From positions 23,932,001-23,996,000 of the forward strand of contig NC_043021.1 in NCBI RefSeq assembly GCF_006345805.1: a DNA stretch of 64,000 nucleotides. Reading direction: 5' to 3'. Below the pieces are notes generated by a model that was given only the letters and a program-made list of their open reading frames with translations, ran no database searches and was not told the DNA's origin. Made by a program: the position numbers and the translations under genes. This DNA comes from Octopus sinensis. Taxonomy: Eukaryota. Of the stretch, positions 9,134-46,323 are shown in pieces. How positions within the stretch are numbered: the first letter of the stretch is position 1; every line of letters begins with the position of its first letter.

Positions 9134-9360
9134 ATAGGTTTCTGGATGGAAGGTATTGTAGAATGCTACATGAATAAACTGAGAAATATATACGCACGTG
9201 AAACAATCACTAGTACATATGTTGACAAAGCTTTATTAGATATACAAATGGAGTGTTACGTGGAAGAGGCTTTCTGCACAGTTGGCTGGGCAAACCGTGA
9301 TTCAATTTTTCAGTTTTTCAAGAAAGCTAAGACTAATCCCGTGTCAAAAATTCACAATGC
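9134..9360 (+). CDS. Stanniocalcin-like gene A, exon 3 (IGFWMEGIVECYMNKL...DIQMECYVEEAFCTVGWANRDSIFQFF...KIHNA)
   Basis: Acceptor ttttttcag|, donor GC|gtaagt (phase 2), 227 nt. QxECY-x5-C-x5-N matches stanniocalcin QEECYSKLNVCSIAKRN. Paralog at 46097-46323. Confidence 0.85.
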
Positions 9361-10516
9361 GTAAGTAACACATAGTCACATTTTTTTGCCGTGTCTTTGT
9401 GGTTGTTATTGTTATTGGCGTTATGTCACTGTAGTCCAGCTATGATCAAAGAAACACCTTTATGGCGTTCGTGTAATCGATTGGACGACATGTCCTGATA
9501 TATAGTTAAATTGTTTCGGATATCTAGATAGATATTTAACTGGATGACATACAATAAAGCATCACCTTCCACATGCAGTCACACGATGAATCGTTGAACG
9601 GCAATTTGAGCTCTTTAGTGTCCAGATTTATTCTTGTACACTCGCAGATTCTTACACCTGCAGATGGCCAGAACAGTGTCAGGTGAGACGAGACCAAATT
9701 TGCTGCTAAACATGAAAAAAAATTATCTTCAAACGTATACAGCATTACCTCAAAGTACAATATGATTACGGAAACTGTATTTTCTAATCACCCATGATGA
9801 ACATAAGTAATTAGTTGCTGTGTAGTACCGGTGGAAGTAGATATACTCATGGTGGTAGTAGCAGTGTCGGTGGCAAGATATAGTATTGGTGATGGTGATG
9901 GTGGTGGTGGTGGTGATGGGAGTGGTGATGGAAGTTTTGATGTTAGTGCAGGTTGCATTGATAGTGGTGGTGATGATGGGAGAACTGACGGTGATGGTAT
10001 TATAGAGAGGATGGTTGCAATAATGTTAATGGTGGTGGTGATGGTGGTGGTAGTGGTGATGGTATTGATAGGGGTATTGGTGTAAAAAATGTTGGCGTTG
10101 ATGGGGTGGTGATGATGGGGTAGTGATGGTGGTGTTACGGGTATAGTGCTGGTGGTATTGATGATTGTGTTATAATGGTATTGGTGTTAGTTGTAGTAGT
10201 ATTGATGCTGCTGATGATTGTGGTATTCGTGTTAGTGGTGGCGGTATTAAAGTTGTTAGAGATGGTATTTGTATTGTTGGTATTCAAAATATCTTAGCTT
10301 CCTCCTGTTGGGGCTTGTTTGTTCCTTTGTGATGAAACCCGTGTTTTTCGGCCCTCCTCTTTTCTCCTTTCACCAATCATTTGACCTTGCGTCTCTAAGC
10401 CAGAAGCCACTAATCACAAGCGCAAGCGCTTATAAACCATTTTAATTTTCATCGAGAGCTTTCTAATCTTTTCAGGTAATTTCTTTCAGTGCTTCAGTAT
10501 TCCAAGGTATTTTTAT

Positions 10517-10920
10517 ATGAGTGGCTGTGTGGTAAGTAGCTTGCTAACCAACCACATGGTTCCGGGTTCAGTCCCACTGCGTGGCATCTTGGGCAAGTGT
10601 CTTCTACTATGGCCCCGGGCTGACCAATGCCTTGTGAGTGGATTTGGTAGACGGAAACTGAAAGAAGCCTGTCGTATATATGTATATATATGTATGTGTG
10701 TGTGTGTGTTTGTGTGTCTGTGTTTGTCCCCCTAGCATTGCTTGACAACCGATGCTGGTGTGTTTACGTCCCCGTCACTTAGCGGTTCGGCAAAAGAGAC
10801 CGATAGAATAAGTACTGGGCTTACAAAGAATAAGTCCCGGGGTCGATTTGCTCGACTAAAAGGCGGTGCTCCAGCATGGTCGCAGTCAAATGACTGAAAC
10901 AAGTAAAAGAGTAAAAAGAG
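10517..10920 (+). mobile_element. SINE (family also at ~8265-8450, 17728-18130 + and 18160-18545 -)
   Basis: Head GGCTGTGTGGTAAGTAGCTTGC...CCGGGTTCAGTCCC and (AAGAGT)n-like tail; multiple copies in the window. Confidence 0.85.
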
Positions 10921-11734
10921 AGAGATATCTACTAAAATGTGGTGTCAGCATTATTTTCATTTTTGCGTAAATTATACGGCATTTTATTCACCGAACCCTG
11001 TATATATATATATATATATATATATATATAATCGTTTTAAAAGTGCCGATCGAGAATTCTTAATAGAGACGCGTCAGTTTCGGTAATTTCCGTTGCCTCG
11101 TCACTTAGGACAGCCATCTTCGGCTCTTTCTGGATTGGCTTTGCTAATAGTATGTATGCTTTCGTCATTCAAATAATTGGATGATTTAAAGATTAGTTAA
11201 TGTGTTTATACAAAATTGATATAAACAGTATTTTGCAATGCTTCATGAAAAAGGAAAACTACAAATGTCACTGAATGTGACTAGGGTGTTAGGAAGCACC
11301 TACATTGCTAGAATTAAGAGTTAAACTGCTCTAAAATGTGACAACGAGTGCAAGGAGCATCAGACTTGCTACAAATAAGAGTCAAATAAGTCTTTACCCA
11401 CAAAAGCATACTTTTATTTACTGGCAGAGGAGATGACCCCCACCCACTGCAACTGAGGTGCCATTAGATTGGCATGCTAATTTCGCATGAAATTTAGTGC
11501 CCAGCAGCAATGGTCACTCCGTAGCGGGTGGCGAAGCTGATTTCTACCCTGTCAGTATATATAGATTTTATCACAGATATCAGTGGCTAATTCCGCAAAG
11601 TGGTAATTTGAAAATTATAGAATAATTAAGGTGGCTAGACGCAATTCAAAACCAAAAAGGAAATAATTCAGCGCCACTAAAATGAAAAGGGGTACAGGGC
11701 GAAACAGTATTGCTAGAAAAAGAGTCAAAGAACT

Positions 11735-11825
11735 CATCTACGGCCGTTTCAGGGGTACAAGGAATGTATGAATGGCGTTGTAAGTATTCAAAATACATAA
11801 ACATAATGCCCCTCTCATCAGGATG
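11735..11825 (-). ncRNA. Type I hammerhead ribozyme fold
   Basis: CAUC-CUGAUGA-G-AGGGG...CCCCU-GAAA-CGGCCG-UA^GAUG: 4-bp stem I, canonical core, palindromic stem III. Confidence 0.75.
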
Positions 11826-12257
11826 GTTTTCTTTGTAATGAAATCCTATATAGTTATAATTCGATAGACGAAAACAATGGTGATATCGTTTACCTGAATT
11901 TAGCTGAATCTGTATATATTTAATTTATCTACCAGTTGATCTACATATTTGTCCCTGAATTTTTTAATTTTGAACTCTCATCTGACATTTCGTATAAACA
12001 TCAAATTATTAAGCGATTCTATCATTTTCTTTTGGAAGCCCTTACCTCGAATTTTTATCTATTTATTTGTCACTCCTACATTCGTGTATGATCATAGATT
12101 TCGCATATGACTTTTACATGTAATTTTGTTCACTGATTTTAAATTTATATATATATGTATATATATATATATATATATATATATATATATATATTATATA
12201 TATATATGAAAAAATAAGTAATAGAAAATGGTAAAATAATTTTTATAAAGAACATTT

Positions 12258-44200: not shown

Positions 44201-44670
44201 TTTCTTTGTACTTTTGTTGTCGTTGTGGGTGCTGGTGGTTGCCGCAGCAAAATTGGTGTCACTAGTGTTAGTTGATGGTGTAGTGGTAGTGGTAATGTGT
44301 GTATCTGCATTTCCAGGAACAGTGAATGTTGTCTCCTTAATATTATTAATATCTTCACCAGTAATAGGTGAGATATTCGATTCCTGCGAAATAGCAGGCA
44401 CATTTGTAGCGATAGTATTGATGTTGTTGTTATTCTTGTTATTCTTGTTCTCATTGTTGTTGTTGTTATTATTATTATTATTATTGTTGTTGTTAATGGT
44501 TGTTGCGCTATTGGAGGTGGTAGATGTGATAGTTCTGGTGGTGGTAGTGATGACAGGGCTGTCAACGATCGTGGAAATATTATCCATGGCATTGACAGCA
44601 ATTTCTTTTTCACAGCTTGTTTTGGAGTGGATGCATTCGAAATATTCGTCCATTTTTCCTCTTCCCTCCA
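41230..44670 (-). mobile_element. Tx1/L1-like LINE remnants: ORF1 (44670-42730) abutting the 3' half of ORF2 (42720-41230)
   Basis: ORF1 has the zinc knuckle CYLCGSPDHLIAKC. ORF2 has LLGVW, EVANAYIAS, FRFLWKG, GGLGMP. The endonuclease and most of the RT are missing. Confidence 0.8.
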
Positions 44671-45049
44671 TCATTCTCTGTCTTCTTTCTCTCTACATAC
44701 ATTATGAGTTCAAATTCTGCCGAGATCAACTTACATCTATCAGGTCATCCCATAAGTTCTGTCTGATTGTACCATTTTTAGATGTCTTGCAAACAACTCA
44801 TACATGCAAGTGCTACCAGTCAAAACCTCCGCATACCGAAAGCCAGCAAGTGTATGGGGTCATCAGGAAAGAATGCGCGCCGTTTTGGGGCCTACCTCTC
44901 GACGGCATCAATATGCATTGACCCCCCCCCCCCCACTGATATGGGGCTCCGCTTGCTAAATCAGCTGGTTATCAAATGTCTGATGGAGTTAATAAATATC
45001 TTTATGCATTTGTGTATATTTAAACTAATTAAATATTATTTTACAGAAT

Positions 45050-45680
45050 AATAGAATTAAAATTTCTTTGAATAAAACCTTTTCTAACCTGGAAGTATCC
45101 AAAGAACATTTAAGGCACAAAATGCTTTATGAGTACAAAAAAGGAAACTCTGCAACCAAAGTGACTCGAAACATTCACTCAGTTTATGGGAAAAAATGCT
45201 TGAATGAAAGAACTTGCAGAAGATGGTTTGCAAAATTCAGAAGTGGAGATTTCAGCCTTGAAGATGAAGATCGTCCAGTTGAGTTTGATGATAAGCTCCC
45301 TGAGGCATTACTTGAAGAAAATCCTGCATTATCAGTTGAAGAATTCGCAATAAAGCTTAGTTCAAATCATACAACTATTCATTGTCATATTCAACAACTT
45401 GGAAAGGTACCTAAACTTGGAAAATAGGTTCCTCATGAATTCTCCGAAAGCAACCGTAAATTCCGAGTTGACATCTGCCCTTCTCTTCATTCTCATGTGA
45501 TTGGTGACGAAAAATGGATCTTCTATCGAAGCCAGGAGTAGGTCGAAACAGACATTTCAGCTTTGAAACCAAAAGAGTTTTACATTGATGGGATTAAAAA
45601 GCTTGTAAATAGATGGAGGGAAGTCATAGATAATCAGGGAAAGTATATTGATGATTAAATTTCAATTCAATATAGTATTT
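45050..45680 (+). mobile_element. Internally deleted mariner
   Basis: EHLRHKMLYEYKKG...CRRWFAKFRSGDFSLEDE and C-terminal GIKKLVNRW. Confidence 0.8.
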
Positions 45681-46096
45681 GGTCTTGTGTTGGAAGTCAT
45701 TCTAACAATTATTAACCTTTTTATTTTTTATCTTTTGACCTCCTACCATCTTGCCCAAATCAGCCAAGCTGCCAAAGGGCTTAATCTGATTTTCTTATGC
45801 AATTTCTGAAAAGAAATTTTGTAATCTTTACTTATTGTATTCGAGGAAAAAATATTCGATGTAAATTGGATCAATAGATTCATTATAATTATTAATTATT
45901 AACATATCTCTCTCTCTCTCTCTCTCTCTCACACACACACACACACACACACACACACACACACACACACACACACACACACACACACACACACACACAC
46001 ACACATACACACACACACACACACACACACACAAGAGACTTATAAACCAATTCCTTTTTCACTGAGAGTTTTCTAAATTTTTCTAAATTTTTTCAG

Positions 46097-46323
46097 ATAC
46101 CTCTCTGGATGGAAGCTATTGTAGAATGCTACATGACAAAACTGAGAGATATATACACACTAGTAACAGTCACCTGTAGATTTATTGACAGTGTTTTAAT
46201 AGATTTTCAAAAGGAGTGTTACCTGGAAAATGCTTTCTGCACAGTCGGCTGGGCAAACCGTGATTCACTTTTGAAGTTATTCAAGAAAGCTAAGACTAAG
46301 CCCGTGTCACATGTTTACAAAAC
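46097..46323 (+). CDS. Stanniocalcin-like gene B, exon 3 (IPLWMEAIVECYMTKL...VTCRFIDSVLIDFQKECYLENAFCTVGWANRD...VYK)
   Basis: C-x15-C-x13-CY-x5-C spacing is identical to vertebrate stanniocalcin Cys98/114/128/135; canonical cag| and |gtaagt. Confidence 0.88.

Follow-up and report, generated by a model that had tools for sequence, protein, structure and literature searches.

A tandem pair of genes encoding stanniocalcin-like proteins

We analyzed a window of 64,000 nucleotides of Octopus sinensis DNA ("the window" means this whole stretch) and found two neighboring genes, A and B, both on the + strand with 37 kb between them (Table 1). Four exons and ten Cys are the layout of the stanniocalcin-like family that contains A and B. 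Gene B is complete. Gene A is without exon 1 within the window and is missing one family-invariant Cys. All splice sites in both gene models have AG/GT, and the three visible exons of A have open frames. The acceptor of exon 2 of A is a putative AG at 3112-3113; at the site of the ancestral acceptor, that of the ortholog, A has TTAT. Exon 1 of B has an alternative donor, in phase, after 38793. The promoter-like TGACGTCA of B is unchanged in the ortholog from Octopus bimaculoides. No third copy of the gene was found within the window. The comparison used was masked and filtered for colinearity; microsatellites dominated the raw self-BLAST and tblastx.

Table 1. Features of genes A and B and of the regions compared between them (positions in the window; L001, O. 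bimaculoides sequence)
Feature	Position	Strand	Remarks
Gene A exon 2	3114..3253	+	phase 1 start; Cys1 to Cys5 of the stanniocalcin-like domain
Intron 2 5'-flank conversion tract	3254..3430	+	vs B 40830-41001, 3.6% mismatch
Intron 2 3'-flank conversion tract	8783..9020	+	vs B 45679-45909, 6.2% mismatch
Gene A exon 3 (227 nt)	9134..9360	+	CTVGWANRDS core present
Intron 3 5'-flank tract, youngest	9361..10118	+	vs B 46324-47043, 2.4% over first 616 aligned nt
Unconverted mid-intron 3	10925..11335	+	vs B 49436-49589, ortholog L001 22191-22350
End of A/B homology domain	17432..17495	+	last A match to B (to 49625) and to the ortholog
Gene A exon 4 CDS, stop TAA	18875..18980	+	A-type 3' exon
Gene B promoter-like motifs	38586..38613	+	TGACGTCA 38586-38593; TATAAAAA 38606-38613; consensus matches only
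Gene B exon 1 CDS	38691..38838	+	ATG, signal-peptide-like N-terminus, Pro/Lys-rich linker
Gene B exon 2	40681..40829	+	
Gene B exon 3 (227 nt)	46097..46323	+	this exon's four Cys all present
Gene B exon 4 CDS, stop TAA	49649..49745	+	

A and B are divergent members of the cephalopod-expanded stanniocalcin family. Stanniocalcins (PF03298; vertebrate STC1 and STC2) are likewise secreted proteins of ~200 amino acids with a ten-Cys pattern. Unlike the vertebrate proteins, A and B come from a cephalopod-specific tandem expansion and are annotated only as "uncharacterized protein". Against PF03298, A scored 13.3 bits and B 20.9 bits, both under the gathering cutoff of 23 bits. Homologs with a link of E=4e-25 to A and B scored 34-58 bits, and a profile of the family, A and B included, reached E=2e-14 with STC2 structures. 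When exon 3 of A was the sole query, a word-index protein search gave no matches.

Nine of the ten Cys columns are invariant among 27 family members and one is nearly so. B has all ten, and its Cys6-Cys7-Cys8-Cys9 spacing aligns residue for residue with that of human STC2. A has nine Cys and is the sole member of the 27 without the seventh, which is a Ser in A (AGT, codon at 9212) and a Cys in B (TGT). Because of this Ser, A alone departs from the ten-Cys feature. A first-pass annotation of this DNA had read the Cys scaffold as retained. Our results support a secreted protein with a Cys scaffold, of the stanniocalcin-like family, and the full set of Cys is retained in B but not in A. The eleventh Cys (dimerization) was not found after Cys10 in the A or B sequences, because the protein ends shortly after Cys10, nor did either have an N-glycosylation site (N-x-S/T, Cys3 to Cys4) at the vertebrate position. 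Both features are treated as variable outside vertebrates by Roch & Sherwood (2011, PMC5654410), who described the invertebrate homologs.

B is 206 amino acids long, as compared with 150-300 for stanniocalcins, and has a hydrophobic N-terminal stretch, MWKYFTALLILLLF, that is signal-peptide-like by sequence. An AlphaFold2 model of B had a pLDDT of 85.4, and its best four PDB matches in Foldseek were all STC2 chains, with probabilities of 0.96-1.00 and modest TM values of 0.38-0.50. That is, the predicted fold of B resembles solved STC2. The family to which A and B belong consists of fast-evolving secreted proteins, and the A and B proteins differ at 42% of residues.

Exons of A and B differ more than the adjoining introns

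We found that the exons have diverged far more than the adjoining introns between A and B, as the first-pass annotation had claimed, and a codon comparison reproduced its hand counts exactly. In exon 2, 27 nt differ, 13 of 46 residues are changed, and 3 codons have synonymous differences only. The corresponding numbers are 39/227 nt, 30 of 76 residues and 2 codons for exon 3, and 37/93 nt, 22 of 31 residues (9 identical) and 2 codons for exon 4. In contrast, the intron after exon 3 had 15 mismatches in 616 nt (2.4%; Fisher p=8e-13 against exon 3). Over its first 470 nt there were 10 in 467, in agreement with the dozen or so differences that had been counted in the ~470 nt past exon 3. There were 6 mismatches in 167 nt (3.6%) after exon 2 and 14 in 224 nt (6.2%) before exon 3. 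Exon 3 differed from its two flanks (p=1.7e-11), exon 2 from its 3' flank (p=3.8e-5), and exons 2 and 3 together (64/367) from the flanks (35/1007; p=2e-16). In a sliding window, the jump in divergence fell at the borders of exon 3. Between orthologs, too, exons diverge ~1.7 times faster than non-coding DNA: 17.8% versus the 10.2% that separates non-coding DNA of B and its ortholog (p=5e-5). The 3'UTR is less similar than the 90-95% identity initially assigned to it; we measured 84-91%.

Flanks of exons 2 and 3 have a recent common origin

We used the O. bimaculoides locus as the outgroup, the only outgroup species and one with many gaps in its assembly. O. bimaculoides carries the same tandem arrangement, and exon 4 of A is orthologous to an O. 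bimaculoides exon (L001 5732-5830). The tandem pair is older than the species split. In the upstream O. bimaculoides gene, N gaps cover exons 2 and 3 (L001 609-5420; L002). The ortholog of exon 3 falls in an assembly gap (L001 16656-17135), which places the genealogy of exon 3 outside the three-way comparison.

In the intron sequence that adjoins exons 2 and 3, A groups with B against the B ortholog (Bo). Site patterns were 27 ortholog-unique, 3 A-unique and 0 B-unique in the 5' flank of intron 3 (302 nt three-way), 7, 1 and 1 in the 5' flank of intron 2, and 12, 5 and 9 in the 3' flank of intron 2. In the same blocks, A and B mismatch at 2.4-6.2% of positions versus 8-9% for B and Bo. These flanks thus coalesce after speciation, and the one before exon 3 differs from the one after it (p=0.017). 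The middle of intron 3 has an A-B mismatch of 11.6%, with A, B and the ortholog about equidistant and star-like. Based on the grouping of A with B in the flanks and the 11.6% in this unconverted part, we infer that patchy gene conversion rejuvenated the flanks. Conversion, offered in the first-pass annotation as a caveat that might contribute, is probably what chiefly causes the contrast between exons and introns.

Exon 4 and its surroundings group by orthology. Differences in exon 4 were 25/93 between B and Bo, 34/93 between A and its ortholog (Ao) and 37/93 between A and B, with four-point sums of 59 versus 74 and 78. The values for the 45 nt upstream of exon 4 were 0.11, 0.19 and 0.31, respectively. 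Exon 2 is star-like and clock-like, with 15 sites unique to A, 11 to B and 11 to Bo, and its genealogy differs from that of its flanks (p=8e-5). Coalescence ages form a mosaic along the A/B pair. A (GATA)n repeat is the distal boundary of the 5'-flank tract of intron 2, and a (CT)n(CA)n microsatellite (9010-9075) lies between the 3'-flank tract and exon 3 of A. Homology between A and B ends 23 nt short of the exon 4 acceptor of B; 3' of that end, A has a SINE pair and A-type sequence.

Several other sources of the similarity between flanks were considered. A shared transposon is ruled out: the flanks are single-copy in the window and in the same place in the ortholog. Purifying selection alone is ruled out by the 3/302 differences between A and B against 27-30/302 for A-Bo and B-Bo in the same block. 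Recent duplication of the whole gene is ruled out by the 11.6% divergence in the middle of intron 3, by the 16-31% found around exon 4, and because exon 4 groups by orthology. It is scarcely credible that assembly or polishing made the introns of the paralogs alike. This can happen in repeat-rich assemblies, and microsatellites adjoin these regions, but copy-specific differences and indels persist in the flanks, the tract mismatches are unequal (2.4%, 3.6% and 6.2%), and A and B are embedded in distinct, transposon-rich surroundings.

Tests of selection and divergence at silent sites

It is possible, but in our judgment unlikely, that the copies or blocks of exon and intron were recently identical, that positive Darwinian selection then changed the exons, and that the introns give the true neutral age. 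The A-B dN/dS was 0.77 in exon 2, 2.3-3.4 in exon 3, 2.4-4.6 in exon 4, and 1.5-2.2 overall. pN exceeded the divergence of the flanking introns in every exon (p from 4e-8 to 1e-23), the pS of exon 3 (0.087; pN 0.192) fits the value for its 5' flank (0.062), and pN between orthologs (0.164) exceeds non-coding divergence (0.102; p=0.0015). In addition, venom-gland toxins have been reported among family members (bioRxiv 10.64898/2026.02.02.703354). However, dN was never significantly above dS (p=0.06-0.07; one-sided Fisher p=0.064 for exon 3, 0.074 for exon 4 and 0.073 for all exons), and dN/dS was below 1 in exon 2 and ~0.7 for the orthologous pair. When the 39 changes in exon 3 were placed at random, the split between replacement and silent changes was similar to that observed. 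The exon pS (0.165) is five times that of the flanking introns (0.035; p=4.5e-6), and recent whole-gene duplication is excluded, as above. Toxin-style positive selection, the cause initially suggested for the exon divergence, is not upheld by these tests: silent divergence in the exons is high, and the identity of the introns reflects post-speciation conversion tracts, a combination that the first-pass annotation had itself named as refuting its view.

The excess at silent sites raises the possibility, which we consider quite improbable, that a process targets the exons and lifts silent and replacement change alike beyond the non-coding rate while conversion keeps the introns uniform. Exon-focused mutation, or repeated swaps of exon segments with other members of the cluster, would be such a process and seems to us very improbable. 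Between orthologs, pS (0.234) as well as pN exceeds the non-coding value (p ~1e-3 each). Changes in exon 2 are clustered (13 codons versus 18 expected; P=0.9987 for >=13 at random), a 5-nt block of differences lies directly 3' of the exon 2 acceptor, and the cluster contains exon duplicates. Against this, clean silent sites are very few (4-fold differences 0/9, 2/16 and 2/6), multi-hit codons inflate the NG86 silent counts, alignable non-coding DNA is skewed toward slower-evolving sequence, and neither exon has a close donor paralog (exon 3 identity to gene C is 37-44%). A/G change linked to RNA editing is unsupported; the exon 3 spectrum has 13 A/T and 8 A/G of 39.

Gene A could also be a decaying copy in which neutral evolution inflates the exon differences. 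A alone lacks the seventh Cys, its exon 1 is absent from the window, the ancestral acceptor of its exon 2 is mutated, the changes in exon 3 are even over codon positions (17:10:12), and A has more unique sites in exon 2 (15) than B or the ortholog. But the visible exons are open and correctly bordered, B and the ortholog have changed nearly as much in exon 2, and neutral decay cannot push exons past truly neutral introns of equal age. We find decay of A extremely doubtful.

Homogenized introns as the probable main source of the contrast

The contrast between exons and introns probably arose mainly from recent copying of introns between A and B, with the exons keeping an older divergence. A and B would be an old tandem stanniocalcin-like pair whose proteins evolve quickly except in the Cys scaffold and in a small number of core motifs. 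Ongoing conversion between the paralogs would cover the 5' two-thirds, starting at exon 2 and taking in most of intron 3. Once the O. bimaculoides lineage had split off, three or more distinct tracts, differing in age, would have homogenized the introns beside exons 2 and 3, and these two exons would have retained the older divergence. The region around exon 4 would be outside the conversion domain and have been diverging since before speciation. The peaks of divergence would then sit exactly on the exons. Tracts may stop at exons because diverged exons block extension of the heteroduplex, or because selection for differing proteins removes converted exons. We note that four tract ends matching exon borders needs selection or heteroduplex rejection. 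The low pS in exon 3 with its higher pN counts against homogenized introns as the full account; it fits conversion of exon 3 together with its 5' flank, followed by fast replacement. Also against it, the excess of exons 2 and 3 (17.4%) over the unconverted intron (11.6%) was not significant (p=0.11); the exons may be older or may simply evolve faster.

Relation to other gene families

The exon/intron divergence pattern is already known; the gene pair showing it is new. Red and green opsins have homogenized introns and an orthology-like exon with a "peak of divergence" (PMC3924837). A and B resemble opsins and RHCE/RHD (Teshima & Innan 2008; PMC3924837) in being tandem paralogs with conversion-homogenized introns and within-species clustering of paralogs. 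In both, exons stay divergent, with a sharp peak of divergence on the exon. Exons of the opsin type follow orthology; in A and B, exon 4 does so and exon 2 is star-like. A and B differ from the opsin type in that several whole exons peak and not a few key codons, and selection maintains the opsin peak, whereas selection against conversion in A and B would be one possible cause. Snake PLA2, three-finger toxins (ASSET, PMC2474615) and conotoxins (PMC3862624) also have paralog exons that diverge more than introns, on a fixed Cys scaffold and with a conserved signal peptide in those toxins. Unlike venom-type acceleration, dN/dS above 1 is not significant in A and B and silent sites share the exon excess; unlike the conserved introns of venom genes, the introns of A and B were found with the outgroup to be homogenized and not merely conserved.

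A 2026 preprint describes stanniocalcin "doppelganger toxins" (superfamily SF5) from octopus posterior salivary glands, highly expressed secreted venom-gland proteins of O. bimaculoides as well as H. maculosa, and proposes stanniocalcin-like proteins as venom components that mimic prey hormones (bioRxiv 10.64898/2026.02.02.703354). SF5 shares protein family and genus with A and B, a link at the family level only. Because BLASTp to stanniocalcin is how SF5 came to light, SF5 may be a paralog that has diverged less than A and B.

Our results indicate that a toxin-like contrast between exons and introns can come mostly from homogenized introns, and that the identity of paralog introns, without an outgroup, is an unsafe neutral yardstick. 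An unannotated tandem pair is now documented in a cephalopod-specific stanniocalcin-like cluster. The peaks of exon divergence mark where functional differences between A and B, if any, would lie, and loss of a scaffold Cys in A is a concrete lead for biochemistry. If a process that targets exons does operate, the gene cluster would be a built-in generator of diversity for secreted proteins.

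Gene models of A and B and their surroundings

Genes A and B, two stanniocalcin-like genes compared here as paralogs, are both on the plus strand and are 37 kb apart. Splice sites are AG/GT throughout and, in agreement with the first-pass annotation, there are no stops or frameshifts in any visible exon. Exon 1 of gene A was absent from the window and presumably lies beyond its edge. No protein identical to A or B was found in the searched protein collection, and the pair therefore appears to be unannotated.

Positions of features in the window
Feature	Position	Strand	Remark
Gene A exon 2	3114-3253	+	acceptor inferred
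Gene A exon 3	9134-9360	+
Gene A exon 4 (CDS)	18875-18980	+
Gene B exon 1 (CDS)	38691-38838	+
Gene B exon 2	40681-40829	+
Gene B exon 3	46097-46323	+
Gene B exon 4 (CDS)	49649-49745	+
Palindrome and box before gene B	38586-38613
Second copy of the 75 nt preceding exon 3	10415-10489		~75% identical; ends ...TTTTCAG
GIY-YIG-like reading frame	1895-2572	-	no Pfam match
Mos1/mariner-type copies (three)	31267-32543, 34909-36204, 57565-58837		92-95% identical; one has a transposase reading frame of 293 aa
Reverse-transcriptase element	20558-23133	-
GIY-YIG reading frame	33519-34489	-	may be Penelope-like
Mos1 HTH fragment	45068-45427		within B intron 2
Young SINE family	10518-10920, 17730-18541		copies ~93% identical, including an inverted pair in A intron 3

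Exon 2 has a labile start (3098-3116 in A, 40675-40690 in B, and about 14020-14035 of locus L001 in Bo, the Octopus bimaculoides counterpart of B). The ortholog acceptor TTAG is TTAT in A, which needs an AG 7 nt downstream to keep the frame, and the five bases past the acceptor differ completely in B (AAAAT vs GTTCT). Exon 1 of B has two in-phase donors (after 38793 and after 38838), and these parallel the two isoforms that RefSeq gives for the ortholog. About 80 nt before the B ATG there is a perfect TGACGTCA palindrome (CRE consensus), with a TATAAAAA box 13 nt downstream; TGACGTCA is unchanged in O. bimaculoides.

The second copy of the 75 nt preceding exon 3 may be left over from an exon 3 that was once duplicated within gene A. 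No exon 3-like reading frame comes after it (a SINE begins at 10518), and neither B nor the O. bimaculoides loci showed a counterpart. The window is AT-rich (36% G+C) and dense in microsatellites and transposons, and its first 3000 nt, upstream of A exon 2, are extremely AT-rich (19% G+C).

Exons and adjoining introns of A and B

We found that the exons of A and B differ more than the introns next to them. There were 27 nt differences in exon 2 (13 of 46 residues changed, 3 synonymous-only codons), 39/227 in exon 3 (30 of 76 residues changed, 2 synonymous-only codons) and 37/93 in exon 4, where 9 of 31 residues are identical; these are exactly the counts of the first-pass annotation. The intron after exon 3 was near-identical, as reported there, with mismatches at 15/616 positions (10/467 in the first 470 nt). 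Mismatches were 6/167 after exon 2 and 14/224 before exon 3. The contrast between exon 3 and both of its flanks was strong (p=1.7e-11), and the jump in divergence is sharp at the exon borders. The 3'UTR was 84-91% identical, rather than the 90-95% estimated earlier.

The O. bimaculoides locus

The outgroup is one species, O. bimaculoides (assembly GCA_001194135.2, which is gap-ridden), and its LOC128250785, with a model truncated after exon 2, was the only close relative in the databases. L001, its locus, is colinear with gene B in promoter, introns and exons, with a non-coding mismatch of 10.2% (359/3533). The window is therefore from an octopus other than O. bimaculoides, and Bo is the ortholog of B. 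The model is truncated because exon 3 of Bo is covered by an N run (L001 16656-17135) that starts at a (CT)n(CA)n repeat; because of this gap, RefSeq has a 96-124 aa protein reading through the exon 2 donor. The exon comparison of B to Bo thus covers exons 1, 2 and 4.

Exon 4 of Ao, the counterpart of A, is upstream of Bo (L001 5732-5830) and its flanks match gene A. A 4.8 kb gap (L001 609-5420) covers the remainder of Ao. Further N runs are present elsewhere in L001, and several in a second locus, L002. A third family member lies further upstream of Ao, so the locus is a gene cluster. The neighbouring member LOC128250786 has its last coding exon in tandem duplicate (L002 15532-15636 and 16044-16145, 82% protein identity), and upstream of it, on the opposite strand, is one more signal-peptide exon of the exon 1 type (L002 5803-5642, minus). 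Cluster members or fragments therefore exceed the annotated number.

A mosaic of ages

We compared A, Ao, B and Bo along the pair. In the exon 4 region the four sequences cluster by orthology: B and Bo differed at 25/93 positions in exon 4 and A and Ao at 34/93, and divergence in the 45 nt before exon 4 was 0.11 for B-Bo, 0.19 for A-Ao and 0.31 for A-B. Together with the exon 4 four-point sums (59 vs 74 and 78), this grouping clearly dates the tandem pair to before the species split.

A and B were sisters, with Bo standing apart, in the introns adjoining exons 2 and 3. Sites unique to Bo, A and B numbered 27, 3 and 0 in the 5' flank of intron 3; 7, 1 and 1 in the 5' flank of intron 2; and 12, 5 and 9 in the 3' flank of intron 2. 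The 5' and 3' flanks of exon 3 are of unequal age (p=0.017). Uniform constraint on the introns was ruled out, as A-B mismatches were 3/302 alongside 27/302 for B-Bo. In mid-intron 3, the three genes were about equidistant (A-B 11.6%, 17/147), and intron 3 of A was as close to Bo (10.6%) as was intron 3 of B. A recent duplication of the whole gene was ruled out by this 11.6% and by the 31% before exon 4. Homology between A and B ends at A 17495, 23 nt before the B exon 4 acceptor. Exon 2 has a genealogy different from that of its flanks: its unique sites were clock-like (A 15, B 11, Bo 11; p=8e-5 versus the flanks).

Patchy gene conversion, a caveat of the first-pass annotation, accounts for the whole mosaic, that is, the flank site patterns, mid-intron 3 and exon 4. 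The site patterns indicate that A and B are an old tandem pair, that recent conversion tracts of different ages lie in the introns next to exons 2 and 3, and that there was no conversion around exon 4.

Tests for selection

For these very short exons, with tests that rest on sequence comparison, the A-B dN/dS (NG86) was 1.63 over all exons; taken singly, exon 2 gave 0.77, exon 3 gave 2.39 and exon 4 gave 2.52. The A-B replacement excess was not significant (p=0.064 for exon 3, 0.074 for exon 4 and 0.073 overall). Random placement of the 39 exon 3 changes gave a mean of 27 changed residues versus the 30 observed (P=0.16), and the changes fell 17:10:12 over the codon positions. Silent divergence in the A-B exons was 0.165, far above the 0.035 of the converted flanks (p=4.5e-6), the very result by which the proposed positive selection was to be refuted. 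Compared to unconverted intron, exons 2 and 3 were only 1.5-fold more diverged (p=0.11).

The B-Bo comparison is a yardstick immune to shrinkage by paralog conversion. Here exons 1, 2 and 4 had diverged by 17.8% versus 10.2% for non-coding DNA (p=5e-5), indicating very rapid protein evolution, at a rate no lower than that of non-coding DNA. pN was 0.164 and pS 0.234 (omega ~0.7); with so few clean silent sites, an elevated silent rate is no more than a possibility. A classical positive-selection signature was not demonstrated in A, B and Bo.

Why conversion tracts may stop at exons

The patchy conversion between A and B that explains the mosaic is placed after speciation and within a bounded domain. 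There are two likely and non-exclusive reasons for tracts to stop at exons. Heteroduplex could be rejected at the exons, whose 17% mismatch would form a barrier that reinforces itself, and selection could purge conversions that erase protein differences between A and B. At their distal ends the tracts meet simple repeats, namely (GATA)n downstream of exon 2, (CT)n(CA)n upstream of exon 3 and, past 9840, an array rich in GGT/GAT. For exon 3, it is also possible that conversion came first and was followed by fast replacement change.

For red/green opsins and RHCE/RHD, selection that removes difference-erasing conversions has been modelled as the source of "peaks of divergence" (PMC3924837). The A/B pattern resembles the "accelerated evolution" of venom genes (PMC2474615) but fails its key quantitative tests; an opsin-type conversion mosaic is the better match.

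A and B belong to the stanniocalcin family

In Pfam searches with A and B singly, Stanniocalcin was the sole match, below the cutoff (13.3 and 20.9 bits vs 23), and both proteins matched PDB STC2 chains weakly with Cys residues in register. Searching 1.8 billion proteins with a profile of A, B and a single homolog gave 38 relatives. The nearest were "uncharacterized proteins" of Octopus sinensis, O. vulgaris, O. bimaculoides and Argonauta, several of which exceed the Pfam Stanniocalcin cutoff (34-58 bits). Ten Cys columns are kept in a 27-member family alignment, the profile of which matches human STC2 structures (E=2e-14). The only credible structural match to the AlphaFold2 model of B (pLDDT 85) was STC2. 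Invertebrate stanniocalcins are recognised by their ten conserved Cys, by a signal peptide and by a length of 150-300 aa (PMC5654410). B fits in Cys pattern and length, and has an N-terminal hydrophobic stretch, by itself the basis for a putative signal peptide. In A there are nine Cys, and the N-terminus falls outside the window. Pappalysin-type metalloproteinases are the partners known for stanniocalcins.

The Cys scaffold, thought at first to be retained, is not fully so: 46175-46177 encodes Cys in B, and 9212-9214 encodes Ser (AGT) in A. Cys7 is missing in A alone among the 27 family members and is present in B and 25 others. Cys4, the usual partner of Cys7 in the mapped STC1 disulfides, is still present in A. 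A would carry an unpaired Cys, which could reflect decay or a new covalent interaction.

In a Branchiostoma floridae protein (P0019/P0042), a phospholipase A2 domain is joined to a pair of stanniocalcin-like domains, which score 74 and 58 bits in Pfam. This amphioxus fusion was unexpected; both families occur in venoms. A 2026 preprint (bioRxiv 10.64898/2026.02.02.703354) reports that the proteins which octopus posterior salivary glands secrete and express at high levels include stanniocalcin-like "doppelganger toxins". The family is already known and its link to venom is newly proposed, and A and B are candidate venom components only.
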